Origin: Orbicella franksi
Lineage: Eukaryota
Assembly (NCBI GenBank): GCA_964199315.1
Contig: OZ116711.1
Span: 19,840,001-19,904,000 of the forward strand
Direction of reading: 5' to 3'
DNA length: 64,000 nucleotides
Shown: positions 27,643 to 48,600 of the stretch, piece after piece
Numbering within the stretch: position 1 is the stretch's first letter
Layout of the letters: the number at the start of each line of letters is the position of its first letter
Position numbers and translations under genes: made by a program
Notes under the pieces: model-generated
Database searches by the model: none
The model's input: the letters and a program-made list of their open reading frames with translations, nothing else
Told to the model about the DNA's origin: nothing

Positions 27643-30600
27643 TCAGCACTTGTTGTGGAGCGAGTTCTTCTTGCAGATGGTCTTGCCTTGACCGGCGTCT
27701 CCACGTGCACAGAAACACTCCTTGCATATGTACTGATCACGCTTGATTTGTTCTCTCCACGCGCTTGCACTGGCCTGTTGTAAAGCTCCAAATTTATCCT
27801 TATTCTCTGAACCCAAGAATGGCAAACCAAAGACAGATCCTTTAGTAGCTTTCATCAGGGATACGTATTCGCCTCCTGGTAGGGGAGCTGCGCCGCTTCC
27901 TGTTTCGGGCTTCTTTCTGTAGAACACGTTTCCTCTGAAGTTTTGTCCGATCACCTCGCCACGGAATTTTCTGTACTTGCCGATGACGTTGAGAATGATG
28001 TCCTTGCTTTCCAGCATGTTGCTGATACTCTCAAGGGAAGCGAAATCAGCTAATGGATTGCGGTCCGTGCTGGTCAGCAGAAGGAAGATCTTGGTAGCAC
28101 CTACGGAAGAAACACGAAAGTTGTTTAGCATACTTGTAGGGAAAATGAAGATTTTGAAGTCAAGTATGTCGTCCTGGATTCAGAGTTAGTTTATGGCAAA
28201 TATTCGTTGAATTATTCCGATTCCAATAACGCGCCGTCAAAACAAGGCAACGTCGCGCTTCTTAACAACACTCACCAGGTCTGAATGGATATCTATAAGC
28301 AGCGGCCGCCATGGCTTCCAAAGCATCACCAGTGTCATTCTCAGAGTTCTCGCCAGCGAATTTGAGATGCTCAAACGCAAGCTCCACACTGGCTAAGTCG
28401 TTCATCAGCTGACCGTTAAGTGTAATGGCATGCGGGTGCTCATGTAACAAGCGACCACCGAATCCCATGACGCCGAAGCGGAATGAGAACTTGGAATCAA
28501 GCGATTGTGTTAAACTGGTCAGGAACGTTGGAAGCTTCTCTGCATAGCTCTTCAAGATCGAGGTCTCGTGTACCAGAATGACAACATCCACTGCTCTGTC
28601 TGCCTTTTGGAACCATCTTTGACCGATCTGTTTGCCACCGCAGCGACCTATAGGCAATTAACAAAGGAAGACTGTTAGTGACTTTTGAATTCTTCCTGAT
28701 TTTGTTGTTGTTATTATTGCTGCTGTAGTTGTCGTGAGACTGCATTTTGATTGACGTCACGTTCGTCATTCAGGTTTTCTCGATGCATCAGTTACCAGCC
28801 ATTCATCGGATTGTTTCGCTGCTCGCGGACAGCTCTAGTTTTTCTTTAACTGTACTTTTTGAAGCCTACCATTTGTACATCAAGACAGCTTCTTTCCTTA
28901 AACTAAATTCAAGGGGTTAAATCTGAAAAATACGTCTTCGCAAGTCGAGTTAATGATTAAGATTAAAATCATTAACACTTACCACACTCAGGCAGATATT
29001 CGGCCCATACTCCTTGCAGTCTAACGAGCTCGATGTAAGCAGCAGTTGTGTTACAATGCTTCATGTCTTTAGGCGTGCTGGTGTCGCATTCCTTGTAGTC
29101 AAGCTCACAGGCCTTGACGAATGGCTCGGGGTCAACAACTGAAGAAAAGTGACTGAGTGGAGAGTTCTTGTCTTTGAACAATGCTCGGCAGCGCTGGATG
29201 TAGGTACTCTCCTTGCACTTGGGTTTCTCATTCTCGAGTGTAGAGACTTTGCATTGTGGATCACGAGTGACTTCCCAAGAGTTCACAAACTCGGTCAGTT
29301 TGGAGGTTGGGGTGTTGTAGCTCGTCATCATCTCATCATGGAACTCGTTGTTGTTGGTTCCCAGAAGACCTGCCGGAAAAACGTACATTAGAATGTAGGA
29401 ATTGTACGCGGGATGTGCTTTAAGTTGCCTTCTAAGGAACAAGTTAACGAAGGTCAACAAATAAATTAATTTATATGTAAGGTTTCTCATGGGACCAATT
29501 GAGAATAAGCCATAACACCGATAAACCCTAATGTTAATATTGAAATTCCCATTACTGGTCTCGATACTTTTTTATAGTGCAAGTTGGGAGAATTGATGAC
29601 GTATAGGTTTCGCATTGGACCAATTGAGAATAAGCCATAACTCCGATAAACCCTAATGTTAATATTCAAATTCTCATTACTGGTCTCGATACTTTTTTAT
29701 AGTACAAGTTGGGAGAATTGATGAAGCATAAATGTATTATCCCTATAAATTCTAATGTCAACATTCAATTTCTCCTTACTCCAACCAACGGGGAACATTC
29801 ACTGGTCATTCTTTTGTATAGTGCTGGTTGATGGCGTATGACAATTTAGCCTTTTTCGGCCCTGATGTCAAGGAATAATTTTAGTTCTCTTCAGTCATTT
29901 TAAAACATTTCTTACAGCATAAAAGAATTGGCAACAATTTCCGTTTTGGCTAGATCTACACTTCTTTCGATCACGTCTGTATTCCTCACTTCACTTAAGA
30001 TTCAACTGATGTTGAAGTCTTACCTGCCATTCTTCCATGATACCACTTGGCGATGTTGAAAGTACACAAGAAATGCTCGACATCGCAGATGATCTCCAAG
30101 CCCAAATCGTGTCGAAGCACTATGAAGGAACCTTCTCGTTGGATCGTCGTGTTGAACGTCTCGACAGGCAGCTCACTGTGGTAACCGTCTGAGAGCTTCT
30201 TGCCAGACGAGGTAACCTTCACGATTGTCTCTACTCTGCCGTCTTGGTGGATTTTCACGCTCGAGTCCTCCGTGACTACGATGATGGCGGTCTCCTGACT
30301 CAAGATGGTGAACTTGTTATCACGGACATCTCTGGCTAGGACATACATACATCCGGACTTCTGATAACCGGGGAAGGTGTAGTAGGTTCCATCAAAGGTG
30401 TACACGTGAGGTCCGCCAAAGATCATGGCCGTGCCTGTGGAAAATGAAAATCACAACATGGTCAACAGAGTGTTCTTGAACGGCTTTTAAGGTAGTCGAC
30501 GCGTTATAAACAATCAGAGCGAGGGGATTCTCCTCTTAGCCAATCAAGACGTGCTTTACTACACTCTCTGGCTACTGTAATTTGTGGCTCTGTGGAATTG

Positions 30601-33600
30601 CTAATGAAACTTGCTGTAGTCATGTTAAAAAAAGTGACGAATTTCTACTAATTTCTTGTGATCAATTTAAAAAGATGTTCGATTTAAACTTACTGTTGAA
30701 TGGTGGAATCCAATTGATGGGGTTCAGCAAGTGGGACATTCGCGACACTTGGTGGTTAATCCTCTTCTGCATGTACCGTTTAGCTCCATGCAGGTTTCGC
30801 ACTCGCATTTTCATCATCTTCTTGGAGTGCTCGAGATAGGAACTAGCATCGGTCATGAACTTCACAGTTGTTTCGTGTTCACGAATCTTCTTGTACAGCG
30901 CTAGTGAGTAGTTGCGAAGCTCAGCACATCTCTGCAAAGTCACGTTGTAGACTCCACGATACAGCTTAAGGCAGATCTTCATGGTCTGATTAAAGGCGAT
31001 TCCTGAGTAGTTTCTGGCCTTACTCCAAGCTTGTGGCAAACTGGTGGAATTGCAGATATCAAGAGTGACATTCAGCGCGACTTCATACACCTGGACAGTG
31101 AAATTTCGCGTAGCATTGAATCCAAAACTGCACCATTGACGAGAGACGTTCAAAGCCATTGGGATATATTCCTTGATCATGGTACTGTTGTAAACCATCG
31201 TCATGGCCTGACGAGAGAGGTTCAGAGCCATTGGAAGGTATCTCTTGGTAGTACAATTGTAAACCATCCCGATGGCCTGACGTGAGAAGTTCAAAGCCAT
31301 TGGAAGATATTTCTTGGTAGTACAGTTGTAAACCATCCTTATGGTCTGACGGGAGATGTTTAAGGCCATTGAAATATATTTCTTGACCATAGTACAGTTG
31401 TAAACTCTACTTATGGCCTGACGAGAGAAGTTCAAAGCCATTGGAAGATATTTCTTGGTAGTACTGTTGTAAACCATCTCTATGGTCTGACGAGAGATGT
31501 TCAAAGCCATTGGAAGATATTTCTTGACAATAGTGTAGTTGTAAACTCTCCTTATGGTCTGACGAGAGAAGTTCAAAGCCACTGGAAGATACTTCTTGCC
31601 CACAGAACAATTGTAAACCTTTCTTAGGGTCTGACGAGAGACGTTCAAAGCCATCGGAAGGTATTTCTTGACCATAGTACTGTTGTGAACCATCCTTATT
31701 GTCTGACGAGAGAAGTTCAAAGCCATTGAAAGGCATTTCTTGACTAGGGTAGAGTTGTAAACAATGCTCAGTGTCTTATTTTGTAGGCGTTGACAAAGCT
31801 GGATGGTCCTGTTGAAAGCGATCATCGAGTAGTTCCTGGCCTTAGCTAATACTTCTCGGTAACAATGGACGGTCTTGTTCAAAGCTGTTATCGTGAAGTT
31901 CCTGGTTAGATTCAATGCTTTCCTACATAGTTTGAGGGTCTCGTTGAAAGCTATCTTGGTGTAGTTTCTGGTCTTACCCAACGCCTCGAGTAGACAGGTC
32001 GAGTTGTAAATATCAAGACTAACATTGGCGGCTACCTCGTACGCTTGAACAGTGAAGTTCCTTGAGACGTTTAAGCCAAAAACGCACCACTGTCGGGCCA
32101 TTGGAAGATACTTCTTCACCAGGGTCGTGTTCTTAACAATCAAAATGGTTTTGTTGTAAAGATGATGGCAAAGCCTGAAGGTCTTGTTAAAGGCAACAAT
32201 GGAGTAGTTCATGGTCTTCCCCAGTGCTTCTCCAAGACAGGTTGAATTGTAGATATCCAGAGTAACGTTAGCAACTGCCTTGAATGCCTGAACGGTGAAG
32301 TTTCGGGTGGTATTAAAGCCAAAAGAGCACCACTGGCGGGCTACTGGAAGATACTTCTTCGCCACGTTGTACGCCTGGACGGTGACGTTCCTAGTGGAAT
32401 TAAAGCCAAAAACGCACCATTGGCGGGCTATTGGAAGATAGTTCTTCACCACGGTCGTGTTCTTCACAATCAACATGGTTTTGTTGTAAAGATGATGGCC
32501 GAGCTTGAAGCTCTTGTTAAAGGCAATACGGCAGAGCTTGAGGGTCTTATTAAAGGTAATCATTGAGTAGTTCCTGGTCTTTCCCAGTGCTTCTCCGAGA
32601 CAGGTTGAGTTGTAGATATCCAGAGTGACGTTGGCAACTGCCTTGAATGCCTGAACGGTGAAGTTTCGGGTGGTATTAAAACCAAAAGAGCACCACTGGC
32701 GGGCTATTGGAAGATACTTCTTCGCCACCTTGTACGCGTTGACGGTGTAGTTCCTTGTGGTATTCAAGCCAAAAACGCACCATTGGCGTGCTATTGGAAG
32801 ATACACCTTTACCATGGTCGTGTTCTTAACAATCACCACGGTTTTGTTGTAAAGATGATGGCCGAGCTTGAAGCTCTTGTTCAAGGCAATACGGCAGAGC
32901 TTGAAGGTCTTGTTAAAGGCAATCATTGAGTAGTTTCTGGTTTTACCCAGGGCTTCTCCCAGACAGGTTGAGTTGTAGATATCGAGAGTAACGTTTGCAA
33001 CTACTTTGTACGCCTGAACGGTGAAGTTCCTGGTGACATTAAAACCAATACTGCACCACTGACGAGAAAGATTCAAAGCTATCGGAAGATACTTTTTCAC
33101 CATGGTAGTGTTGTAAACAACCAGTATGGTTTTGTTGTAAATACACTGGTAAAGCTCGCGGGTCCTGTTCAAAGCGATTGTTGTGAAGTTCCTGGATTTG
33201 AGCAACGCATCTCGATATAGTCTGAGGGTCTTGTTCAAAGCTATCGTTGAAACGTTCCTGCCGTGACTCAGTGCCTTTAGGTAGAGCTTCATGGTGACGT
33301 TGATGGCAATCTTGGAGTAGTTCTTGGCTTTACCCACTGCCTCTCCCAGACAGCTTGAGTTGTAAATATCCAGTGTGACATTCTCAGCGACTTTGTACAC
33401 TTCAATAGAGATATTGAGTGTTTTGTTCACACAAACACCGTACCAGTGGCGGGACAGGTTCAAAGCATTAGACAGGTATATTTTGGTGATATTAGAATAG
33501 TGACGTGACAGGTTCAAGGCACGAGATAGATATCTGTTGCTAACGTTGTAACAGTGACGTGACAGGTTCAAAGCACGAGATAGGTATCTGTTGGTAACGT

Positions 33601-36600
33601 TGTAACAGTGACGAGACAAGTTCAACGCCCGAGACAGGTATTTGTCGGTGACATTCTTTACATGCGTCATGTTCAAACTTTTAACGAAGTTCTTGGTGAT
33701 GTTGAAGTAATGGACAGTCATGTTAACATACCGTACAACAACGGGGTGATTCTTGATATGTCTGTAACCACTTCTTACGAATCTTACGAACCTACCAGTC
33801 TTCTGGCGATAGGCAATGGCGAGGTCCTTCGTCATATTCAAGTAATGAAGAGTGATGTTAACGTACCTCTTTGTAAGAGGGTGGTTCTTCGTCAGGTTGT
33901 ATGCGTTGATCAGGAATCCTTGTGTCTGGTTGCGGTAGAAGACAACCAAGTTCTTGGTGATGTTCAAGTAATGGAGAGTTGTGTTGATGTACTTGCCAGT
34001 GAGATTGTGATTCCTTGTCAGGTTGTAAAACTTCATTACGAAGCCGTACGTCTTCTGACGATAGAAAACTGTTTTGTTTATGGCTACTGCAACCCACGCT
34101 TTGCCGATAGTCCTGACGCGGATAGACATCTTCTTTGCTTTGGCCTTAACTTCATCAAAGGTCTCGATTGCTTTTGCCTTAACTTCATCAAATTTCTGGA
34201 TTGCGTTCTGTTTCAACGTCTCCATCTTGGCCACAGCTTGCTTTTTCAGCGACTTCATCATCTCCAGAGCTTCCTTTTTCAACTTTTCCATCTTCTCCAA
34301 AGCTTTAGCTCTCAACTCTTCCATCTTCGCCAAGGCTTTGGCTTTCAATGTTTCAATCTTCTCCAAAGCTTTGGCTTTCATTTTTTCCATCTTTTCAAGG
34401 GCTTCCCGTTTCATGGACTTAAACTTGATTATAGCCTCGCGTTTTAGAGACTTCATCTTGATCACAGCTTCCTGTTTCAAAGACTCCATCTTCTCAAGAG
34501 CATCTTGCTTGAGGTTTTTCACTCTTTCCACCGAGGCTAAGGCAAACGACTTGATGCTTCCATCAAAGGGTCTTGGGTGTGGGAAAACAACAGTAATGCC
34601 CTCGTCTGTCACTTGGATGTACTTGGGAATAGCAGCACGGAGGTCAGTGATGGTTTTCTTGACGGCAATACGAGCATTGCGAATCGTGATACCAGCATTA
34701 CTGATTGAGATGTAAGCTCTGTTGATGGTTTTGTTGAAGGCAACACGGACATCTTGGACTGTTGTGTTGACAGCAATGCGGACAGTTTGGACTGTTTTGT
34801 TGAAAGCAATGTGGACAGTTTGGATTGTTTTGTTGAAGGCAATGTGGACAGTTTGGATGGTTCTGTTGACAGCAGTGCGGACAGTTTGGATGGTTCTGTT
34901 CATGGCATCACGAGCTTCCACGAACCTTTTGTTGATAACCAAACGAACACCGTGGACGGTCTTGTTGAATCTGCGTGTTATCTTGATGAAGGTGACGTTG
35001 AGGTATCCAACGGTGCGATTAACATATCCAATGGTAGTGTTGACGAATTCCGAAGTCTTCATTGCCAATTCGTTGAGCAAGCGAGGACCATGGTTATTGA
35101 CAACTGCCATTGTAATGTTCCTAGTAATGTCAAAACCTCTGCGTACTCGCTCTTTGACAGCATCCTCGAATCCATAGTACTTGCTGATGAAGATTGCCGT
35201 CTTTATCACCTCCACACGCGTTGCGTTTAAGAAGCTAATGACGGGTTTGGAATTGTCCAGGGTTGTATTTAAAGCCAGTAGTGTTGTATTCAAGGCACGG
35301 ATCAGCTGCAGCTTAGTGTTGTTAAACTCCTCCAGCGTCACGTTAACAGCCAGGCGAGTCATGTTCAACGTGAAGTTGTAGGCACGGATGCATAGAGCAC
35401 GTCCCTCAAGGATGGACTCGCGGATTGTCATTTTGCCGAACTTGCGAAGCATGGCATATGGCTTGCTGTCAAGTGTCATTTGGACCGCTTGTCTTGACAT
35501 ATCCATCGCACGGGTTTTCAGGTCATTTGCACGCTCGAATGCCTTCTCTTTCAGCTCGAGTGCCTTCTCTTTCAACACGAGTGCCTTCTCTTTCAACTCG
35601 AGTGCCTTCTCCGTGATGTTCTTCTTCAGTTCTTTTACTAGCTTGCTGCAGTTGTGGTACATCGGTACAATAGTGTTCTTATAAAATGGTAGGACTTTGC
35701 TGTAGTACAAAGGCTTCAGTTCTTCTCTACAGAACTTCATGCATCTTTCCAATTCGTTTCTGCAATACTTCATACCGCGTTCCAAGGTCCTGTTTATCCA
35801 CACACGGGTAAGATTCACTTTTTCTGTGGTCCAGTTACGAGCAATGGCAATAACTTCTTTCAAGGTCACGTTCTTGTAACGATTGATGTAGCGTTCAGCA
35901 ATGGCTCTGTACATTTTAACCAGCCTGGTGTAATTTCTGTATAATGGGGCGAGGTGACTCTTGTAGATGCGTTCGTAGTGACCTCCCAGAATCAGGGTAT
36001 AGTTCTTCACTGCCACTTTAATAATCTTCGTGTAATTCTGGACTGTCGCATTCAGGATCTTTGTATACTTCTGGACTGTCATATTGAAAATCTTTGTGTA
36101 ATTCTGGATTGTTGCATTCAGGATCTTTGTATAGTTCTGAAGAGTCGCTTTCACTATATTAGTGTAATTCTGAACTTTCGCTTTCAGAAGGATGGTATAA
36201 TTCTGAACTTGTGCTTTCAGAAGGATGGTATAATTCTGAACTTGTGCTTTCAGCAAGTTTGTGTAGTTCTGCATTTTCGCCTTGAGAATGGTTGTGTAAT
36301 TCTGGACTTTCGCTTTCAGAATGGTTGTGTAATTCTGGACTTTAGCCCTCAGAATCGTGGTGTAGTTCTTAACTTTCGCAGTCATGTTCTTGTAATAGAT
36401 CTGTCCAATGGCCACAAATTTGCGCGTTAAGTTCTTAGCTTCTAACGTGATGTTCTTGATTTTAAGAGTGACGTTTCTGGCCAAGTCAATGGTCTTGAAC
36501 ACATACTCGTGCTCCACGATTTCACGGAGTTTCATCGCCTTGAATTGGTCAAACTTTTCAAGTAACCTCTCGCGAGTTTCCTGCACCTTCGTTTTGATCT

Positions 36601-39600
36601 TCTCTGCCATCAATTCACTCCTGTCCATAAGTTTCTCCACGATCAGTTTACCCTTCTTCAGTGCCACCTGAACGGCCACTCTCAGCTTACTAGAGGAATA
36701 CTTTACAACACCTTGCCCAGCGTCAACAAGTTCGTGTTGACGAACCTCTTCAATAAGCTCAACCCACATTTCATGATATATGACTTCCTCGATTGGTGTA
36801 TCCTTGATGGCGGCTTTGATCTTCCTCAGAACCTTCTCGGACAGTCTCTCGATGAATTCCTTCGGGTTAGCCATGATCTTTTGGATCTTCTTCTCGAGGA
36901 AATCATACCTTTCCTTGAGCAAAGCATACCTTTGCTTGATTTGGGCTGGGAGTGTTACGTTCAAGTAGAAGATAGCTTCTTTGACCTTAGCCTCCACTTT
37001 GGGTTTCATCTGCTCGACATATTCAACAATCTCGTTGTACTTCTCACTAAGGAATTTTTCAGTCCTGGCGTAACGCTCCTTGAGCTGGTGTTTCTGGATG
37101 TACTCCTGGATGTCTTTATGGGCCATGATCTTTTTAAAGCTGTCGTTCAAAAACTTTCTGGTTTCATTGAGTTTCAGCAGAGTGATGTTCCTTGCTTTTC
37201 CCAGGAGTGGCAGGGAAATGTTTATGGCTTTTTCCAGAAGTGGCAGAGAGATGTTTTTGGTTTTGACGAGGTAAAAGATGGTCTGGTTGTGCATCAACTT
37301 TACATAAGGATGGAAGATAGCAGCAAGGTCCTTGGCAGCGATACAAGTGATGTTGGCGGTTTGGTTGTACAGAGAGATGGCTTCTCCTGTGATGATCATC
37401 ACGGTCTTGTTCAGCTTTTTCAGCTCCTTTTTCCATTCTTCTACTTTAACCTCCAACTTTGCTTTGGCGTCCTTGATGGTTTCTTTTATTTTCTTCTCAA
37501 TGATCTCTCTGTTCTCATGATACTTGTTCTCTACGAGCGCTCTGACCTCGCTGAACTTGCTTTCTGCCAGTTCATAAGCTTCGTAGTACAGCTCCTCCAT
37601 GGTCTTCTCTTTGTTCTCATCGTACCACACTTTAAGAGCCTGAGCGTTCTGGTTCACAAACAACACGGTCTTGTCAGCATATCTCAGCACCAAAACTTTG
37701 CCTCTGAGGTAGTTTTCCTTGACCAAAGGCACAACAGTCACGTTTACGTAACGGATTCCTCGAAGCACCAGAGTACGGGTCTTGTTATAGGCGCCAACAG
37801 TGATATTTCGCGTCACGTTGTAGATGTGCAGCGTGTAGTTGCGGCTCAGGTTGTAGAACTTGTGGTAGTATTGAAGAGTCAAGTTGCGAGTTAAGTTGTA
37901 GTACTGAAGGGAGTACTTGCGGGTGAGATTGTAGTAGTGCAGTGTCAAGTTACGAGTCGCGTTGTAATACTGAAGGGCCATTAGCTTGGTGCGGTTGACC
38001 AGGACAAGGGTCAAGTTGTACGCCCTCAACGTCGCATTCTTGGTATCGTTGAAAAGTTTCACTGCAGCTAAGGTGACGTTCTTGTAAAGTTTCACTGCAT
38101 GGATGGACACGTTCTTGTAAAGTTTCACTGCATGGATGGACACGTTCTTGTAAAGTCTGAGTACATGGAAGGAGACGTTCTTGTAAAGTCTGAGTGCATG
38201 AAAGGAGACGTTTTTGTAAAGTCTGAGTGCCTGGAGGGAGACATTCTTATAGAGCTTCACTGCTTTTAAAGTGACATTGTTGTAGAACTTCACTGCTTGG
38301 AAGCTGATGTTATTGTAGAGTTTCACTGCTTGGACGGTCACATTCTTGTAGAGTTTCATCGCACGAAGGGTGACATTCTTGTAAAGAGCCAGTCCGTGCT
38401 TGCTGGAAAATTCATAAGCTTTGATGACAATCTCCTCGTACGTCATGTCCTCGTACTCTCGCAACTTAGCAATCAATGCATTCACTTTGTTTGTCAGCTT
38501 TTCCCGATAGACGTTGAATTTTTCCAAGGCCTTTTCTTTCGTGTCTTCATAGATCTTCTCCAACATTTCCTTGTACAGGTTGTACATCTTAAGTCCTTCT
38601 TCTTTGTGCTCGTTGTAACACGCCAACGCGAACGTCTTCGCCATGTTGTAAGCTTCAACGGTTTTGTTAACGGTGATGTTTTTGTAAAAGCCAGCCATTT
38701 CGTACGAAACATTTCTCAACTTTCTTTGGCAGTCGAAGCTGATGTTCTTAGCCAATATTCCATACTTGACGAAAACGCTCCTTGTTTCGTTTCCAATGGC
38801 GAGGAATTCCTTCACTAAGGCCTCTTTGGATAGTTTCATGAGGACGAGATCACTTGTAAGGTTCAAGACACGCTGCGTAAGGTTGGTTATGTCCTGCATC
38901 TCTTTCAGTACTTTCACTGTGACGTTTCCAATGCGGTATTTCGCAAGGAGTGCTCTCTCCGTAATGTTAAAAGCTCGAACGCGCGCCAGCAGTTTTTCCC
39001 ACTTAGCTTTAAGTTCCAAGGCTTCTAGTTTACCTTTCAGATCCATCTCCTTCCACGCTTCTTTGATGGGACGAATGAGTTCGAGGGCGCGTAGTTGTTT
39101 TGTAACATTCAAGACCTCCGCGGAGACATTTTTGGCAAGGACTTGGATTTTCTTGATGGAAATGTCCATGATCTCCCTAGGACGCAATTTCAGAAGCTTT
39201 TGGAGAGACTTGTTCAGGGCTATTAAAGACCTGTTGTATATCAGAGGGGCGCGTCGGCTCAGGTTAAATCCAAGTTCAATCGACTGATTCAAGATCTTCT
39301 TGGAGAGGTTAAAGTACTCAAAGCTCTTTCCAATGGCGAAATCCACGATCTCGTCTGGTGTCTTCTGTGAATGGTCGCTGATAAATGTAATGACAGCGGA
39401 GATGTTGCTGTAAAGAGTGTGGTTGAGTGATGTGAGCGTCTCCGATGCGATCTCCAGGGAAAGAAGAACAGCCTTATCCAGCGCTTTGCCGATGGGAACA
39501 CGACGAATCGTGATGTTTCGTACTTGGTACATTATATCCAATGCCATGGGAACAAGCGGTTTGACAATAGGCTTCAAATAGTTTGTGACGTTGCTCTTCA

Positions 39601-42600
39601 GATCATCAGCAAACTTGCCAATGGGTGTGACAGCCTTAAGTACCAAAGGATACGCTTTCTCCTTCACTGAGATGAAAATGTTTCTGCCAAATTTAATGAG
39701 AGGGCGGTGAGTCTTCATCAACTTTCTGTAAGCAACCAAGGACACCCTCCCGACACGAATGTATATGGTCCTGATTTGTTGAGTCACGTTCCGAGCCAGA
39801 TGAATGGCTTGAATGGTAGCATTTCTCATGAGCTTGGGAAGAACTTTGGTCAAATTCTTTGTGAAATTCAACGCTGTTTGATGGATCAGACAGGCCTTCT
39901 TCCTGAGAATCTTGATGTTCTTCCAGGCAGTCTTGTTAAGCAACTCGAACTTCTCCCGGAAGGTCCTGTTCAGCAGCTTGAAATGCTCCTCGAGTGTCTT
40001 GTTTAGAACAGTGATGTTACGAACGCTCAAGAAATGTTCCCCAAGGGTCTTGTTTAGAACAGTTATATTACGAACAATCAGCGTCAAGTTCTTGGCAATG
40101 ATGGTCACATTCTTCAGGGTGCAAGAAGCATTGAAGTTGCATGTAAATTCCTTTACCTCAACCATGTACTTATCATACAGAGGGCCTACTTTCTGTCCGC
40201 GGATCTCAACTTCTCGCATCTTGATGATTAGCTGGCGTGTCTTCACCTTCATTTTCTCGACAAGTTCTGCGGTAGTAACTTCAACCTTTTTGGAAACGCG
40301 CTTGGCGATATCCCCAAGTTTTTCTCCACGAACCGTTACGGTGCTCACCATAATGGATACGTTATTGGCCCAGACTCTAACATCTCGGCTGATGTTCTTT
40401 AGATGGAGGGTGATATTTCCAATTATGGGTGGAAGCACCTCTGTGCGGAACCTTTTGTAGGCGATTGTGACGTTCAGACGAATTCTCTTGTAAAGTTCGG
40501 TGGCGTTACCCATCATCTTTGGAAGCCTGTTGATTGTGTCATTGAGTGTCTGAATAGTGACGTTAAAAAGACTCTGCGTCAAGTTCTGGGCCTTGATTGT
40601 GGCATTCTGGAGCAGTCCTGTGTAGTTGTAATTCTTGACTTGGGCGTACAACTTCAGAACGACAGGTTTGATCTTGGCTTCGAGTTTCTTGACAAGCACT
40701 TGGACCTCTTTGGTAAGGTTTTGCCCCATAAGGATTGTCAGATTGTAGTACCTCAGGGTTACATTTCTGATTAACGTCTTCAGAAGTTTAACTCGGTTCA
40801 TGAGCGTGGTTATGGTCGAGGTATTCCAAGTCAGCGAAAGACGGCTTGCCTCAGCGTTTAAGAGGTACATCAGGCGAGACTCGTTCACCACATTCTCACC
40901 AAATTTGCTTTGGATGGTCACCTGGAGGCGATAGTCATCTGGCATCTCCCCGACAACCTGCCCTGAGATTCTTGGAGTGACGGTTACATTGAAGACAATG
41001 CTTCTTGAAGAGGGGTTAAATCTCAGGAACCACCCTGCTTTGTGATTTTCATAACTGACGAAGGTGCTAACGATATAGTTCTTCCAGTCGAACCTCCCGG
41101 AGAAACCAACGGTACGTTTCAATGCTGAGAATGTCAAGAAGAGTGTCTTGGTTTCCATGTCCAGCTTCTCAGTAAATGTTAGTGTTCGCTTGAAGATCGT
41201 TACGCCAGAAGTGAAGGACTTCGTTAACTTGTCATACTCCCAGGCCAGCGAAAGTGACTTCTTAAACCCTTTCAAATCCATAACTATTCCCATGCCTTCA
41301 GTATTGTCCCAACTAACGTCAAGAACCACTGGTGCATTAGGCAATACGTCAATCGAAAGATGAAGTTTTTGTTCGTCCCACTTTAAGTCGATCTTATGAT
41401 TCCATGTCCTATTGAAGGCTGCAATCTCCGTCGTGAAAAGCAGACCGTGTTCTCTGCTTAACACACCTCTAACTTCCAAAGGAAAAGCGGGGAAGATCTC
41501 AAAGTGGCCTTCGTATTCCCCTGTGCTTTTGCTGTATTGAAGCCAATTTTCAATCTTCTTATCGAAAGCGGAGACCATGCTACTTACTGACAGACCATCG
41601 TAAGTGTTCCAGCTAGTCGTCCATGTAATTGGTCTTCTTGGAATGAATTCGACTCTGACATCAACGGACTTGCGTTCCTTGTACCAGATTAGAGACTGTG
41701 TCATCGTTTTTTCAGGAAGGTACTCGACGGTAAGAGTATTGGAGAGTTCCTCGGAGGTGTTTCTATAAATACCAGTCAGTGAAACCTCCTTGCCCTTGGT
41801 GTAAATCAGCGATACCTTGGCCTCATGATAAGAATCCTCAGCATTGGAGTAGTTGTTGTAAGAAGCATCCCAGCCATACTCGAAGGTGCGGCCCATCGTT
41901 TTAACAATGTACTGGTAGCCGAGTTCGTGACTCTTCTCCGCTCTGGAGTACGTAAGTTTGGAGCTATCAAAGAAAAGACTTTGACTTCCATTTCGAAGTA
42001 TACGGAGCATGACAAGTTCTTTTAGGCCCGTTTCCTTGGTGATAAGGGTGTTCTGCCATTCACCAACAAAGCGACCAATGTGGACGCGATACTCGAGCAT
42101 CTTACGGTGAGCAGTGTTCAAACACATGACAGATGATTTGGCTGCAATTGTTTTGTTCCAGAACAGGACAACAGCAGCTTCTTTCAAGGTCTTGCCGTTG
42201 AGCCAGACGCCTTCCACGCCGACCTGCTTCTTGAAAACGGTGGCGTTAAATCCGATTGCTTTCTCAGTGTCGTTGCGGAAGTAGAGTGACGCACCGACTG
42301 ACTTGTTCACCACTGTTGCATTAAAATGGAGGCTCTTCAACTCGTCGGTGTGGAAGGAGCTCACCCAAGATTCGAAGAAGATTGTCTTGTTAAACTTGGC
42401 AGTCAGACGAATACCACAACACATGGGATCCTCAAACCTTTGTGTTTTCAATTCACCAGTTCGGTTAAGGACGGTCAAGTTGAGGGCCATGCTCCTCTCG
42501 GCCGAGCTATTTGTGAAAACAGCGCATAGTTTCCCACGCGACTGACCGCGGTATTCGGGGTAGATGCAGGCACTTTTCTGCGAAGGTGAATTCTGGAGGA

Positions 42601-45600
42601 GTCCAACAAGAGCGACAGTGGAATTCTGATAAGCAGCCCTAATGACAACCTTGCTCTCTTTCTCTTGGAAGACGAGTTTGCTTAACAGGTCAAACGATTT
42701 GTTGCAGCATCTCATGTTTAGGTGTAAGCCCGTGCTAGCTGAATTACGGAAATAAACTAAAGAGGTATTCATGGTCTTGTTCATAACTGCAAGATTGAAC
42801 TTGAGTCCTTTCTCGCCATCGAGGTTAACCAGGGTCCAGACAGCTTCCATAGTCTTGTTCAGGGCTGAAGCATTGAACTTGACGGATCTTTCGTTCTCGC
42901 TCCTCATGTAACTCCAGACAGCTTCAACTGATTTGTTCACGGCAGAGGTATGGAACTTGATGGCTCTCTCATCCCCATTCTTCAAATACGTCCAGAAGGC
43001 TTCTACAGTATTGTTCAAGGCTGAAACATTAAACTTGATGGATCTTTCATTGTCACTCTTCGAATAACTCCAAACTGCTTCAAGAGTTTTGTTCACGACG
43101 GAACCGTAGAACTTGATAGCTCTCTCGTCCTCAGTCATTGCATAACTCCAGACAGCCTCGATAGTTCTGTTCATGGCTGAAGCATTGAACTTGATAGCTC
43201 TCTCGACGTCGCTCCTCACATAACTCCAGACAGCCTCGATAGTTTTGTTCAAGGCCGAAGCATTGAACTTGATCGCCTTCTCATTCGTGTTGCTTGCATA
43301 ACTCCAGACGGCCTCGATACTTTTGTTCATGGCTGAAGCATTGAACTTGATAGCTTTCTCGTCTTCGCTCATCTTATAACTCCAGACAGCCTCGATGGTT
43401 TTGTTCAAGGCTGAAGCATGGAACTTGATAGCCTTCTCATTCTTGTTGCTTGCATAACTCCAGACGGCCTCGATACTTTTGTTCATGGCTGAAGCATTGA
43501 ACTTGATAGCTCTCTCGTCTTCGCTTATCTCATAACTCCAGACAGCCTCGATGGTTTTGTTCAAGGCTGAAGCATGGAACTTGATAGCCTTCTCATTCTT
43601 GTTGCTTGCATAACTCCAGACGGCCTCGATACTTTTGTTCATGGTTGAAGCATTGAACTTGATAGCTCTCTCGTCTTCGCTTATCTCATAACTCCAGACA
43701 GCCTCGATGGTTTTGTTTAAGGCTGAAGCATGGAACTTGATAGCCTTCTCATTCTTGTTGCTTGCATAACTCCAGACGGCCTCGATACTTTTGTTCATGG
43801 CTGAAGCATTGAACTTGATAGCTCTCTCGTCTTCGCTTATCTCATAACTCCAGACAGCCTCGATGGTTTTGTTCAAGGCTGAAGCATGGAACTTGATAGC
43901 CTTCTCATTCCTGTCGCCTGCATAACTCCAGACAGCCTCGATTGTCTTGTTCATGGCTGAAGCATTAAACTTGATAGCTCTCTCGTCCTCGCTGCTCACA
44001 TAACTCCAGACAGCGTCAATAGTTTTGTTCATGGCTGAAGCATTGAACTTGATAGCCTTCTCATTTTCGCTCCTCTCATAACTCCAGACAGTCTCAATAG
44101 TTTTGTTTATGGCTGAAGCATTGAACTTGATAGCCTTCTCATTCTTGCTGTTCAGGAACGTCCAGATAGCTTCTACAGATTTGTTCGAGACAGAAGCATT
44201 AAATTTGATGGCTGTCTTGTCTCCAGTCTTCACGTAACTTAAGACAGCTTCAGCAGTTTTCCTCATGGCGGAAGCATTAAATTTAATGGAACTTTCATTC
44301 TCCTTCTTCAAGTAACTCCAGAAGGCCTCGGCACTTCGGTTGAATCCAGTGGCGTTGAATTTGATCAGCTTCTCGTTCTTGAAATTAATAAAGGTCCACA
44401 TGGTCTCTATCGTCTTGTTTAAGGCAGATCCGTTAAACTTGATGCTCTTCTCAGTGGCAAAATTCAGGAACGATAAGGTCGTTTCGATGGATTTATTAAC
44501 GGCGTTGGCCTTGAACTTCAAACCCTTCTCGCTCGTGAAGTTAAAGAAGGTCCAAGTGGCTTCAGTTGTCCTGTTTAGAACACTAGCCCTGAACTTCAAA
44601 CTCTTCTCGTTTCGTGAATTGAGGAAGGTCCACCTGGCTTCTATGGTCTTGTTTAGAGCGCTGGCCTCAAACTTCAAACTGTTCTGGTTGTCCGATTTAA
44701 GCAGGGTCCAAGTGGCATTGACGGTTTTGTTAACTGCACTTGCCTGGAACTTCAAACCTTTCTCGTTTTCCAGATTAAAGAACGTCCAAGTGGCGTTAAC
44801 AGACTTTTTTAAAGCACTTGCCTGGAATTTCAAGCTTTTCTCGTTTTCCAAGTTAAGGAAGGTCCACGTGGCATCCATAGTTTTGTTAACTGCACTTCCC
44901 TGGAACTTTAAACTCTTCTCGTTTTCCAAGTTAAGGAACGTCCACGTGGCGTTAACGGTCTTCTTCAAAGCACTTGCCTGGAATTTCAAGCTCTTTTCGT
45001 TTTCCAAGTTGAGGAAGCTCCAGGTGGCATCAACGGTTTTGTTCATAGCATTTGCCTTGAAGTTCAAGCTCTTCTTGTTTTCCAAGTTTAGGAATGACCA
45101 AGTGGCATTGATGCTCTTGTTTCCAGCACTAGCATTGAAAATCAAACTCTTCTCGTTTGGCAAGTTAAGGACACTCCATGTGGAATGGATGGTCTTGTTT
45201 AGAGCAATGGCCTTGAACACCAAACTCTTCTCAGTACTCTGGTCGATGAAAGTCCAGGTGGCATCGATGGTTTTGTTTAAGGCAGAAGCATTCAAACGAA
45301 GTCCTTTCTTGCTTTCGAGGTTGAAGTAGGACCACATGAGCTCGGCCGTTTTGTTCAAGGCAGTGACGTTAAATAACAATCCTATCTCTTTTCCAGCGTT
45401 GACATACGACCACACAGCCTCCAAGGTCTTATTTAAAACGGTTGCATTAAGCTTGATGCTCTTTGCGTCTGAGAAATTGCGGAAGGTAAGAGCACTTTCG
45501 ATGGTGTGATTCAAGGCCATGGCGTCAAATCGCAGTCCTTTCTCTTTGCCCACGTTGACATACGACCAGAACGCTTCGATGGTCTTATTGATGGCAGTTG

Positions 45601-48600
45601 CATTGAACTTTAAGCTTTTTCCGCTTGTAAGGTTAACCAATGTCCAAGCTGCTTCTATGGTCTTGTTTAAACCTCTTCCATTGAACCTCAGCCCCTTCTC
45701 TTGACCAATGTTAACGTAAGACCATACAGCGTCCATGGACTTGTTCAGGAGCAATCCGTGGAACTTGATTCCTTTGTTCTGCGTGAGGTTGAAGTACGTC
45801 CAAACAGCTTCTGCTTTGCTACCAAGCACCGTGGCGTTTGTCTTTAGGGACTTCTCGTTGGTTGCGTTGACAATACCTGTGTACCATCTGATGACACGGT
45901 TCTTGTTGTCATGGCTGGCTGTGAAACGGATACCCTTTTCGTCTCCAGCCTTGGCGTAGGATCCACGAAGGGTAAATGACTGATCGCGTGGACGGGCAAA
46001 CAAGCGGAGAACACCTTCTTTCTGAGCTTTGAGAAGTCTGCCTGTTAATTCAATTCCAGCCTTCGTTGGTTCGTTGCTGAAGCTAAAGACGAAGTTGTCC
46101 TCCTCCTCTCCGAGATTACCATTGAAGCTGACCTCTGTCTTTGTGCAGGTATGGTTCGCCAGGAAGTTGACACTCTTCTTGGGGATGTTCAGTTCTCCAG
46201 AGGCGTACAGATACTTGCCTGTCCAGTACGTCATATTGCTGACGAAGCCATACACACCTGACCTGTTGTAGAGCTTTGTCAGCTGCTTGATGGTGTAGTT
46301 TTTGTACGATGCGGACAGTTGAACGCCAAGCTCTCGGGTGAGGCCACTCAGTTCCGTGTTGTTGAAAAAGTGACCATTTAGGACGATGGGGTGACCATAG
46401 ACAACGTCTTTGGCGGAATACGTCAGGTTCACAGCGTGCGTTATGTTGTTGTAAGTCGCCTCGAACTTGCCAAAATTTACGCCAACAGCACCGGTAGACA
46501 TGCTGAAGAGTTTGCCGTCTTTCTTGAGCCACAATGTACCGTTAGCCTCAAAGTTCCGCTCCCACATTGCTCCAGGAGTAGACATTTTGGCGATAACATC
46601 GTATTTGTTGTCATCCTCGGTTTCCAGGCGTTCTGCTATCAACTGATATTTCGTAAGCTTAGGATCCGTTCTTTGCATCGACAGACTGAAGGAAGCTGGG
46701 CCAGAGAACGGGAAGAATGGCGACTCGTAGTCACGATAACCCAACGGCAGAGAGAGTTGACCACAGAATGTTATTCCAAGAACACGTGTCATGTTCAGGC
46801 AAGGTGTTGGCTGCAAGAAACAATCAAATGGTTTATGGTTACCAAGGTTACTTAAAGGGACAATGCATAAACGACTTGTCTTGATGCATACATAACGATA
46901 GCTTCAAGACAGACAAATTTGAATTTTCAATGCTCTCAAATCAAAAGGTGTCTATCAGAAATAGGCTCTATGTGAGAATAGAGCAAAACACTTGACATCG
47001 CGGGTTCAAGTATCTTTACATTGTTTCTTTTGTTCTTTATCCAAAAGCAACCATGAACTCTACAGTTTCGCTAGCAAATACTACTTACACTTTGTCAACA
47101 AATTTGAGACAGTGTCACACAACAACAAATCGGAGACAGTGACATACAACATAATTATTAACTTACTTCGATCCTCCTTGGTGTTCCTTCAATGGGCAGT
47201 TTCTCGTCGTTGAGAGTGGTGAAAAGCGACGAACTGTAATGAAAGTAAAGGAGCTACGTCACGGTTAACGCATCGTGAAACGTTTAGCCTAAATTTTCAA
47301 ATTCGTTGTTTGTATTAAATCAGTGTTAATCTTTTCCATCCTTTATCATCCTTGCTCGTGTCTTTCTGTCTTATTCAACTATTATTTTAAAGATTCTTTT
47401 AATCGCGGACAAAATAACTCAAAATACTGTGGCTGAATTCCTTGCGTTTATCATAAGCTCTAAAAATAATCAATTGTACTTACGATACGTTGACAAACTG
47501 AACTGGCTCCTCAGGGACGCCGACTTCGAACTTTAAGATTTCTCCTTGAGTATAAGTGGCGTTTCCTTTGATCTGAGTAACAGTGTACAAAGATGAGTTG
47601 ACAAAGATACCAGCCTCCGCGTACAAAGCGCTGACTCCCATGCGACCAGTGATGTCAACAACGGCACTACAGGAAAGAAAAACACCACGAAAAATGAGAT
47701 AGAGTTGAACAAAATTAGGCTGCCACCACCGGCCATTATTAGGAAGTAGTCAGTAGCTGGATGAACTCTTGTCAAGCCAACTAGACATTGTAATATGGAT
47801 GTGGTCATCGAGTTTAAGGTTCCATCATAACTGACTTGGTTTATACTTGAAGGGTCCTCATCCCCGTGGACGAAATATAAACTCTTCTCAGAGACTGTCA
47901 CACGCGAAATAACAATTTCGGCTATTAGTTATTAACATTGTTCACTCTCGCTGTCTGCATTACAAATAATAAATGTAGGAGAAGTAAGAGACTTATATCA
48001 ATTAATCTACAACTTCTATGTACTCCTTTTTTATTAAATTTCGACAGTATTACACATGCAAGTATAGGAGCGCTTTTGGAATATGCCAAATTAAACGTTG
48101 CAAAAGTTGTGTAGTGCAATTCTACTGTGAGATAAAGTATCTAGTCGTTTACGTCTTGCGTTACCAGCCGTCCGAGCTATAAACAGGGGTTATTTTTAGC
48201 TTATTACGCAATGTAGTGAAAGGATTACGTGACCAGGTAAAAGAAGCATTCGTAGGTATTATTAGTAACTTTTCCGAAGACATACCTTGGTTTGACGTAG
48301 CCTCGTACATCAAAGTTCATTTTTCCCCAGAACATGTTCCTGATGTCAAACTTTCCAGCGAGTTCTACCGCGGCCACAGTGGTTCCCTTGGCGCTCAGTT
48401 TGAGTGGAAGACCAAGGATGGTGGGGACAGTAGTCTCGGCGTCTAGGAACATCATGCTCTTGCTGAAACTCTTCTTGCCTCCCTTGGCCAATGCGATCAA
48501 GATGTCAATCATGTTGATTTTGTCCACTTCGTCATTCAACCAGCTGATGTCGTCGAAACTGGCAAGTCTCATTTCGTTACCAAACATCTTCACAGAAACG

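Follow-up and report, generated by a model that had tools for sequence, protein, structure and literature searches.

The 64,000-nucleotide stretch of Orbicella franksi DNA analysed here (the window) carries on its minus strand a giant exon which, judged by its sequence, belongs to the coral's apoB/apolipophorin orthologue, a gene of the APO branch among large lipid transfer proteins. Taken as a whole, the evidence makes it likely that the product is a secreted scaffold that wraps lipid and is built from an LLT module, a beta belt, a helix zone and a VWD/C8 terminus.

Gene structure and transcription

The giant exon lies within a reading frame that stays open on the minus strand for 5,384 codons (30662..46816) and is bounded by an acceptor at 46810 (...tttcttgcag/CCA) and a donor past 30694 (...AACA/gtaagt); frame and splice sites agree exactly with the single exon open for 5,372 codons that had been proposed in a preliminary description of this DNA, and the LLT module and VWD which that description placed before and after it are found by Pfam on the exons of the window. 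The whole gene has ~18 exons and runs from 59363 to 27643 (Table 1). The gene model is without internal stop and gives 6,816 aa when the count starts at the position matching residue 31 of the orthologue, to which two small 5' exons add ~29 aa, for a total of ~6,850 aa, with an uncertainty of ~22 aa at the junction near 52863/52119. The predicted polypeptide is of ~780 kDa and very basic (pI 9.75), its N-terminus was judged by eye to be hydrophobic and lines up with those of orthologues P0001, P0006 and P0007. In the LLT block Vitellogenin_N is followed by the open beta-sheet domain and the last donor is at 47167, the acceptor of the first exon being read by eye as below 57974, near 57875. A bacterial-style reading of two plus-strand ORFs (36713..37894 and 44340..45329) was rejected, since the exon to which they are antisense is coding, conserved and transcribed.

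Table 1. Features of the gene in the window, in order of transcription
Feature	Position	Strand	Details
Exon 1	59318..59363	minus	start codon, hydrophobic signal-peptide-like N-terminus (MRSLIFVLLATG...), donor GTACGT
Exon 2, small	58521..58565	minus	...PVSKERHRPPNCDT; acceptor tgcag, donor gtaagt
LLT-module block, ~11 exons	47167..57974	minus	Pfam, tblastn, junction search
LRRTR/S, dibasic furin-type motif in LLT-module loop	49031..49048	minus	motif only
Giant exon	30694..46810	minus	16,117 nt = 5,372 codons + one base; canonical splice sites
DUF1081, apoB/apolipophorin-specific	46496..46801	minus	exon aa 4-105; PF06448
26-aa unit array	42782..45898	minus	~41 units, exact register, no indels
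Amplified 156-bp (52-aa, two-hairpin) unit	42835..44134	minus	8.3 copies, recently amplified
Non-repetitive region	40811..42781	minus	exon aa about 1344-2000; 36-80% identity to orthologues
Helical zone	30695..40810	minus	exon aa about 2001-5372 (~3,360 residues)
RVRR motif	35138..35149	minus	helical zone
121-aa units	32167-33061	minus	363-bp × 2.5; helical zone
23/24-aa units	31137-31762	minus	72-bp × 8.8; helical zone
Intron 3' of giant exon	30435..30693	minus	259 nt, GT..AG
Four 3' exons	27643..30434	minus	tblastn, Pfam, junction search
VWD exon	30024-30434	minus	PF00094
C8 exon	28983-29369	minus	Pfam
Third 3' exon	28276-28647	minus	
Last exon	27643-28100	minus	stop codon

RNA contigs from four independent studies have a sole intron removed, the one predicted immediately 3' of the giant exon, and no splice joint was seen in them across the last 5.3 kb of that exon, which supports its being one transcribed piece. 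In RNA runs 96-97% of sampled words were present for the exon middle and 81-89% for its 5' part, the lower share being due in part to the ~7% of that query that is intron.

Family membership

Vitellogenin_N and Vit_open_b-sht were matched by Pfam on six upstream exons of the window, and by tblastn the LLT exons are 73-93% identical to orthologues. The LLT module of one orthologue matched residues 19-943 of the apoB-100 chain 9bd1_A with E=6.3e-71 (243 bits), as against 9.3e-33 (116 bits) for lipovitellin and 6e-5 for MTP. DUF1081 scored 30.4 bits on the giant exon (cut-off 25) and was recovered again by a whole-genome search, and the C-terminal VWD (E=4.1e-11, on exon 30007-30432) has C8 on the following exon. 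With the LLT module nearer apoB-100 than lipovitellin and DUF1081 present, membership of the vitellogenins was rejected. A genome search for MTP with PF19444 was without match, as were its controls. The motif LRRTR/S aligns with RRRR, RGRR or KQKR/S in cnidarian orthologues and with RRFR/S in an ant apolipophorin; in insect-type apolipophorin-II/I a furin-type site within the LLT module is cut to yield two subunits. The LLT module, DUF1081 and an apoB-like belt model thus support the secreted apoB-type lipoprotein scaffold of the preliminary description.

The beta belt and its hairpin array

Two segments of the giant exon were folded with AlphaFold2, exon aa 1-700 and exon aa 2750-3650. The first is modelled as an all-beta meander of 50 strands and no helix, with pLDDT 80-88 over exon aa 100-380 and ~50 deep in the array; the second (901 aa) is about 95% helix with a pLDDT of 39 and therefore only its secondary structure is usable. 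These models, together with repeat periods of 26 aa (first zone) and 11 aa (second zone, as far as the end of the exon), agree with the earlier view of a beta zone followed by an alpha zone. When a composition classifier was trained on these two segments, it placed a step at aa ~2000, although it discriminates weakly and gives a hint only. A hydrophobic-moment scan (100° versus 170°) was ambiguous, calling aa 800-1400 helical and failing to set the 26-aa zone apart as beta, and AlphaFold2 was used instead.

Foldseek with the model of exon aa 1-700 returned human apoB100 structures as the top PDB hits (9ea7, E=3.2e-6, probability 1.00). A profile of the same residues found no match among PDB sequences. 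The case for homology between this belt and that of apoB is one of fold and context, and it is with moderate confidence that the modelled long amphipathic beta-sheet region is said to resemble the apoB belt. Each 26-aa unit is predicted to form one beta-hairpin, with a 12-residue strand, a 2-residue turn, a 10-residue strand and a further 2-residue turn, the inter-unit turn carrying a near-invariant NK[TS] sequon. Four adjacent 156-bp units at about 43303-43926 share 96-99% DNA identity, their copy number being that of the assembly alone. The well-conserved non-repetitive region that follows is probably a continuation of the belt, which on our own estimate would have ~2,000 aa, roughly 145 strands and a length of roughly 73 nm, about half of it made up of 26-aa hairpins.

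The helical zone

Many independent 11-aa arrays are found in the helical zone, as are 18-aa units and the 23/24-aa units, in which a proline is fixed. These 23/24-aa units are reminiscent of the proline-punctuated 22-mers known in exchangeable apolipoproteins. The zone is like apolipoproteins A-I/A-IV/E (PF01442) in its 11-residue periodic amphipathic helices and weakly matched apoA-IV in the PDB with E=0.0024, yet it scored 48.9 bits against PF01442, under the cut-off of 90, and the likeness is therefore one of design rather than shown homology; unlike the exchangeable apolipoproteins, the coral helices carry polar-face sequons and lie covalently within an apoB-type protein. The motif R[VM]RR is kept in 9/9 stony-coral orthologues examined and absent from 4/4 anemone-type sequences.

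N-glycosylation sequons

The giant exon holds 320 N-x-S/T sequons where 64±8 would be expected (5×). The enrichment is limited to this exon, which has 5.96 per 100 aa, while the parts on either side have 0.78 and 0.55. Among orthologues, identity at sequon Asn is 0.83 and 0.64, compared with 0.53 and 0.25 at other Asn. Sequon Asn of the helical zone lie on average 130° from the hydrophobic moment. In predicted strands a polar-face bias was not significant (11 versus 7), with 15 of the 33 sequon Asn in the beta-model test sitting in turns, and a turn/edge position is therefore claimed for the NK[TS] site only. Since the putative glycan sites lie where hairpins turn and along the helices' polar side, they would face water. 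Studies of Nematostella (10.1101/2022.01.24.477498) and Oculina cover, in their available text, expression and localisation and not the repeat or glycan architecture; the 320 conserved sequons are apparently an undescribed part of the coral apoB family. A second, compact paralogue (contig C1) has 12 sequons per 100 aa and there is also a sequon-rich starfish relative.

Some LLTPs serve as clotting or pathogen-binding proteins, and it could be argued that the coral product is a VWD/C8-multimerised glycoprotein which acts outside cells in mucus, matrix or defence, with hundreds of N-glycans and lipid carriage secondary. About 320 conserved sequons would fit such a role, as would VWD plus C8 at the C-terminus, the very basic polypeptide, a helical zone of >3,000 aa that is fold-less in a low-confidence model and the immune roles reported for vitellogenin domains in the available part of one source (PMC7949091). 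It would seem unlikely, however, that a protein of this kind should have kept and conserved DUF1081 and all of the LLT module together with an amphipathic belt like that of apoB; VWD is moreover ancestral in the family and also present in insect lipid carriers, and expression data, as far as the available sources go, point to gastrodermal nutrient-handling cells.

Orthologues and growth by repeats

Among other stony corals and among anemones there are orthologues of 4,900-6,200 aa, and a 14.3-kb exon without interruption is found in a further coral genome. The present copy is the longest among the orthologues retrieved because its internal repeats have multiplied: in comparison with three coral orthologues, all of its large insertions fall within repeat arrays and amount to whole numbers of units, and the excess over Oculina (~810 aa) consists entirely of whole repeat units. 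Amplification of the 156-bp unit matches an excess of 312 aa (12 × 26) over Oculina and Stylophora, and about 500 aa of excess lie in other, more diverged arrays. Anemones have 12-15 hairpins and other corals 26-37, compared with 41 in the present exon. On these alignments the exceptional length is the outcome of lineage-specific tandem duplication of repeat units, much as the preliminary description had proposed. That description would have counted its reading as refuted if orthologues of the same size and architecture were universal and characterised, and this is so in part: orthologues of similar size and architecture are general in Hexacorallia, and the family is named and partly characterised, being already known because Nematostella ApoB and Oculina "apolipophorin" have been studied.

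Short-read contigs cannot count near-identical 156-bp units such as the four described above, and the lower RNA word share falls over the same part, so that the units might be over-counted by the assembly and the true exon be nearer the 13-14 kb of other corals. We regard this as very improbable; most repeat copies differ by 10-25% and each occurs in RNA contigs with zero mismatches, the excess in the more diverged arrays stands apart from these units, ORFs of 5,279-5,348 aa run without a break in contigs of other corals and the intron in the query partly explains the lower word share.

Likely role

As a coral apoB/apolipophorin, the predicted polypeptide would run from a signal peptide through the LLT module, DUF1081, a ~2,000-aa beta belt and ~3,360 aa of helix to VWD and C8. 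By analogy with apoB and apolipophorin, the LLT module would nucleate lipid in the ER, the belt would then wrap a neutral-lipid core and the helices would spread across the phospholipid surface; lipid binding, secretion, glycosylation and particle formation are all attributed to the coral protein through family membership. Published data on relatives point to production by gastrodermal cells and to transport of dietary or symbiont-derived lipid through the mesoglea: in the available text of the sources, apolipophorin/APOB is a gastrodermal marker that is higher in symbiotic Oculina (10.1101/2024.06.20.599951; PMC8551165), and Nematostella ApoB is located in endocytic gastrodermis and mesogleal cells (10.1101/2022.01.24.477498).

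Coral eggs are very lipid-rich, which counts for a protein that mainly loads eggs with wax ester and triglyceride in a vitellogenin-like role. In its favour, too, LLTPs with a C-terminal VWD include, in the available part of PMC1783640, vitellogenins and crustacean apolipocrustacein. Such a yolk precursor has little probability, however, given an LLT module far nearer apoB than lipovitellin, the presence of DUF1081 and the gastrodermal marker in Oculina; in Nematostella, as far as the available text goes, ApoB is below immunofluorescence detection in oocytes and at a low level in mass-spectrometric analysis of eggs after spawning, which argues against yolk loading, and a separate Vtg performs that task (10.1101/2022.01.24.477498). 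Among the candidate roles first put forward, lipid transport out of gastrodermal tissue that bears symbionts is supported by the literature and yolk loading is not.

Comparison with known lipid carriers

Human apoB-100 (9bd1, 9ea7; PMC11839476) is similar in its LLT module and DUF1081, in a long antiparallel amphipathic beta meander with strands of about 11 residues and in having most of its lipid-binding part encoded by one very large exon. In total length the coral protein exceeds it by about 50%, yet its beta part is only about 20% longer than the human belt (1,774 residues, 61 nm; PMC11839476), most of the excess being helix; the unusually large particles put forward in the preliminary description gain no support from this belt length. 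Coral helices form one contiguous ~3,360-aa block after the belt whereas the human ones are nine inserts (1,779 aa) within it, and the apoB analogy may therefore not carry over. Further differences from human apoB-100 are the exact 26-aa repeat in half of the coral belt and the dibasic motif in the LLT loop. The C-terminal VWD/C8 is listed for 0/7 fish apoB entries, and the fish apoBs retrieved have 3-9 sequons, depleted relative to composition, as opposed to 320 in the coral. The vertebrate apoB-100 layout, with a belt to the C-terminus, helical inserts and no VWD, was rejected, as VWD/C8 is present, helix takes up all 901 aa modelled from the second zone and the 11-aa period continues to the end of the exon.

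Insect apolipophorin-II/I and apoLTP (for example Acromyrmex 'Apolipophorin' P0030, about 4,270 aa) share the order Vitellogenin_N, open beta-sheet, DUF1081, ..., VWD and have a basic R-x-x-R/S motif at the same LLT-module loop, and the Stylophora orthologue is named 'Apolipophorin' in the database. Their LLT identity is nevertheless 25-29% (with an anemone orthologue as query), they have no 26-aa hairpin array, are at least 2,500 aa shorter and have a sequon density of about 1.3-1.7 per 100 aa as against about 5-6. The ApoB of Nematostella vectensis (Lebouvier et al., 10.1101/2022.01.24.477498) and the 'Apolipophorin APOB' of Oculina arbuscula belong to the same orthologous family in Hexacorallia. 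The anemone orthologues retrieved have the whole architecture in common, including the 26-aa unit and sequon enrichment, but their length is about 4,950 aa and their helical zone takes up about 2,150 aa, compared with about 3,360 aa here.

Implications

A tentative reading, which we hold to be possible though somewhat doubtful, is that hexacoral apoB constitutes a structurally distinct 'glyco-lipoprotein' scaffold with a modular hairpin belt, a helical mantle and an N-glycan shell. The number of identical 26-aa hairpins (12 to 41) would set particle circumference in each lineage, a mantle of >3,000 aa would follow the belt, and where vertebrate lipoproteins have a charged surface, much of it would give way to a shell of carbohydrate made up of >300 conserved N-glycans, placed at the turns of hairpins and on the polar faces of helices. 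That the glycosylation motifs are conserved and phase-locked suggests a surface that differs in its chemistry from vertebrate LDL, and the C1 paralogue and the starfish relative suggest that marine invertebrates more broadly share this solution, in contrast to fish apoB with its depleted sequons.

The gene itself is ordinary, being the coral copy of a lipid carrier that was recognised earlier in cnidarians and already serves to mark symbiotic gastrodermal cells. What makes it valuable is that it offers a natural experiment on how lipoproteins are designed, in that identical hairpins can be counted and their number varies by lineage, and the proposition that apoB length sets particle size is therefore directly testable across species. 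Lipid from algal symbionts underlies reef nutrition, and the structure of its carrier may be of use in work on bleaching and coral nutrition.

Gene structure and transcription

The giant exon lies within a minimally longer open frame and has canonical splice sites at both ends, a polypyrimidine tract and cag before it and gtaagt after it, which makes it 16,117 nt long, exactly as the preliminary description had it. Searches by tblastn with three coral orthologues placed about 11 short exons upstream and four downstream on the same strand; translated from the window DNA these match Vitellogenin_N, Vit_open_b-sht, VWD and C8, with DUF1081 lying at the start of the giant exon itself. A gene model built on these exons is stop-free over 6,816 aa, and two small 5' exons add an ATG and a hydrophobic leader. 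The whole product comes to ~6,850 aa, ~780 kDa and pI 9.75, so that the 6,870 aa first proposed holds within the uncertainty of one junction.

Features of the apoB/apolipophorin gene and its surroundings (window positions unless stated)
Feature	Position	Strand	Length	Remark
Two small 5' exons	ATG at 59363	-		
Short upstream exons	57875→47107	-		gene-model donor 47167
LLT-module loop motif	49031-49048	-		LRRTR↓S
Open frame	30662..46816	-	5,384 codons	
Giant exon	30694-46810	-		
RVRR motif	35138-35149	-		helical zone
Antisense open frame	36713-37894	+	393 aa	within giant exon
Antisense open frame	44340-45329	+	329 aa	within giant exon
Intron	30435-30693	-	259 nt	GT..AG on coding strand
Downstream exons	30432→27646	-		model stop-free to 27643
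Phosphatase frame	22496-24031	-	511 aa	single open frame
Second APO-family exon, same genome	G000:C1:23600033-23603704 (L004:3033-6704)	+	1,224 aa	

The exon is transcribed: 96-97% of sampled words from its middle 6 kb are present in eleven RNA runs, polyA libraries among them, and this segment is contained in 20 runs from 13 studies. Over 42500-47300, a query of which ~7% is intron, 81-89% of words are present in fourteen RNA runs. Contigs from four RNA runs of four studies, aligned to 30000-35999, contain a single joint, the removal of the intron next to the exon (its placement ambiguous by one base), and they match all the diverged repeat copies in that interval with no more than 1-2 differing letters. 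As the intron is excised these contigs represent RNA and not contaminating DNA; as none of them has a joint within the exon over that interval, the idea that most of the exon is spliced out is unsupported, although rare isoforms with in-exon splicing, to which short-read contigs are insensitive, may exist.

The two antisense open frames most likely reflect no more than the bias and repetitiveness of the coding strand. The frame downstream of the gene matches a NIF (CTD-like) phosphatase domain (1.9e-55) and is an unrelated neighbour gene.

Family identity and relatives

In Oculina the orthologue's LLT module, which is 73-93% identical to the window exons, aligns with residues 19-943 of human apoB-100 (9bd1_A) at 6.3e-71, compared with 9.3e-33 for lipovitellin and ~6e-5 for MTP; this ranking, together with DUF1081, assigns the gene by sequence comparison to the large lipid transfer proteins, on their apoB/apolipophorin branch. 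The initial reading as a lipoprotein scaffold thus gains support from the apoB-100 match, from DUF1081 and from a belt model that resembles apoB100.

Relatives in Oculina patagonica (6,042 aa), Montipora (6,215 aa), Stylophora ("Apolipophorin", 5,522 aa) and sea anemones (~4,950 aa) are likewise very large, and uninterrupted ORFs of 4,760-5,350 aa occur on other coral contigs. On a 93-kb genomic contig one of these ORFs is flanked by split LLT exons, and therefore the giant single exon is shared by at least one other stony-coral genome; its occurrence is probably wider still. The nearest bilaterian LLT modules are those of insect apoLTP/apolipophorins (~4,300 aa, VWD kept), a 6,367-aa whitefly protein, a 5,031-aa starfish protein and fish apoB. 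Universal orthologues of the same size had been named as a point against the initial reading: giant size is indeed general in hexacorals, and the window protein is the longest among the 59 relatives retrieved, by a margin that is not categorical.

Records P0018-P0023 (JGI/ENA/Logan) are LLTPs of 4,460-6,250 aa with 30-38% identity to the anemone LLT module; they lack the 26-aa unit and are very poor in sequons (0.13-0.53 per 100 aa). The same genome also holds a second APO-family gene, whose open exon begins with DUF1081 (E=1.4e-9), aligns collinearly (21-24% identity) with the giant exon in condensed form and has 146 sequons (11.9 per 100 aa).

A predicted hairpin belt followed by a predicted helical block

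The first zone (exon aa ~305-1343) is built of ~41 26-aa units that keep perfect register without any indel. AlphaFold2 on an orthologue alignment gave, for aa 1-700, 50 strands and zero helix, each unit forming a 12-2-10-2 hairpin, with a pLDDT of 80-88 over aa 100-380 and ~50-57 deeper into the array. The top PDB matches of this model are human apoB100 cryo-EM structures (E=3.2e-6, probability 1.00, 460 columns). The non-repetitive, conserved stretch aa ~1344-2000 probably continues the belt. The human belt has 1,774 residues, 120 strands and a length of ~61 nm (PMC11839476); by the same arithmetic a coral belt of ~2,000 aa would have ~145 strands and measure ~73 nm. The unusually large particles of the initial reading are at this stage a conjecture. 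Among the relatives retrieved the 26-aa unit is undetectable beyond Hexacorallia.

The second zone (aa ~2001-5372) contains many separate arrays with 11-aa periods and, near its end, units of 18, 23/24 and 121 aa. The model of aa 2750-3650 is ~95% helix, with single helices of up to ~250 residues, and since its pLDDT is only 39 no defined tertiary fold is implied. Against an apoA-I/A-IV/E profile the zone scored 48.9 bits, below the cut-off (apoA-IV E=0.0024), a weak likeness that fits amphipathic helices on a lipid surface and does not imply homology. Whilst in human apoB the helices are inserts within the belt, in the coral protein they are predicted to form one block ahead of VWD.

In pairwise alignments to three coral orthologues all insertions of at least 15 aa sit in repeat arrays and the largest are whole units, which bears out the proposed growth by tandem duplication. 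The excess over Oculina comprises 312 aa (12 × 26), 44 and 55 aa (4 and 5 × 11), ~220 aa in the 121-aa array and 176 aa in the 23/24-aa array, and hairpin counts run from 12-15 in anemones through 26-37 in other corals to ~41 in the window. Identity among four neighbouring 156-bp units is 96-99%, which means very recent amplification or homogenisation; this array is also the sole place where the assembled copy number is provisional.

Conserved glycosylation motifs

The exon carries 320 N-x-S/T sequons (229 NxT, 91 NxS) against 64±8 in shuffles, taking up 70% of its Asn, and their density per 100 aa is 5.96 compared with 0.78 in the LLT part and 0.55 in the VWD part. All hexacoral relatives are enriched 3-6.5× (2.4-4.9 per 100 aa). 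Sequon Asn are the best-conserved residue class, with identities of 0.83 and 0.64, whereas other Asn reach 0.53 and 0.25. In the helical zone their mean angle to the local hydrophobic moment is 130°, a stronger polarisation than that of Lys or Glu, and in the modelled hairpins the Asn of an invariant NK[TS] occupies the inter-unit turn; inside predicted strands their polar-face preference is not significant.

Within the family sequon density spreads more than 30-fold. The starfish Acanthaster (P0043) has 188 sequons, 3.7 per 100 aa and 3.2× expectation, octocoral and insects have ~1.3-1.7 per 100 aa, and fish apoB (P0051-P0059) has 3-9 sequons, 0.1-0.24 per 100 aa and below expectation (0.1-0.3×).

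Probable role, possible processing and significance

Nematostella is described as having one ApoB only, with expression in the somatic gonad and the trophic gastrodermis; its tagged protein appears in endocytic tissue, in mesogleal cells and in spermaries, and its level in eggs is low (10.1101/2022.01.24.477498). Oculina arbuscula "Apolipophorin (APOB)" is described as a gastrodermal cluster marker that is higher in symbiotic tissue (10.1101/2024.06.20.599951; PMC8551165). From these expression data the protein is most likely secreted to carry lipid, both dietary and symbiont-derived, away from the gastrodermis. Of the roles first suggested, transport of symbiont lipid is thereby favoured by the Oculina data, and yolk loading of eggs becomes less likely given the low level of ApoB in Nematostella eggs.

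Two basic motifs may be sites of processing. LRRTR↓S aligns with RRFR↓S in an ant apolipophorin and RRRR/RGRR/KQKR↓S in the cnidarian orthologues, which suggests that a putative apolipophorin-II/I-type cleavage may be older than the cnidarian-bilaterian split. R[VM]RR↓S is kept in 9/9 stony-coral orthologues examined where anemone-type sequences have RV[SGK]H, and could be a coral-specific processing site.

As the gene falls in a known, named family and giant size is general in hexacorals, its novelty is modest; a belt whose hairpins can be counted and glycan motifs that are conserved are the part that is apparently undescribed.
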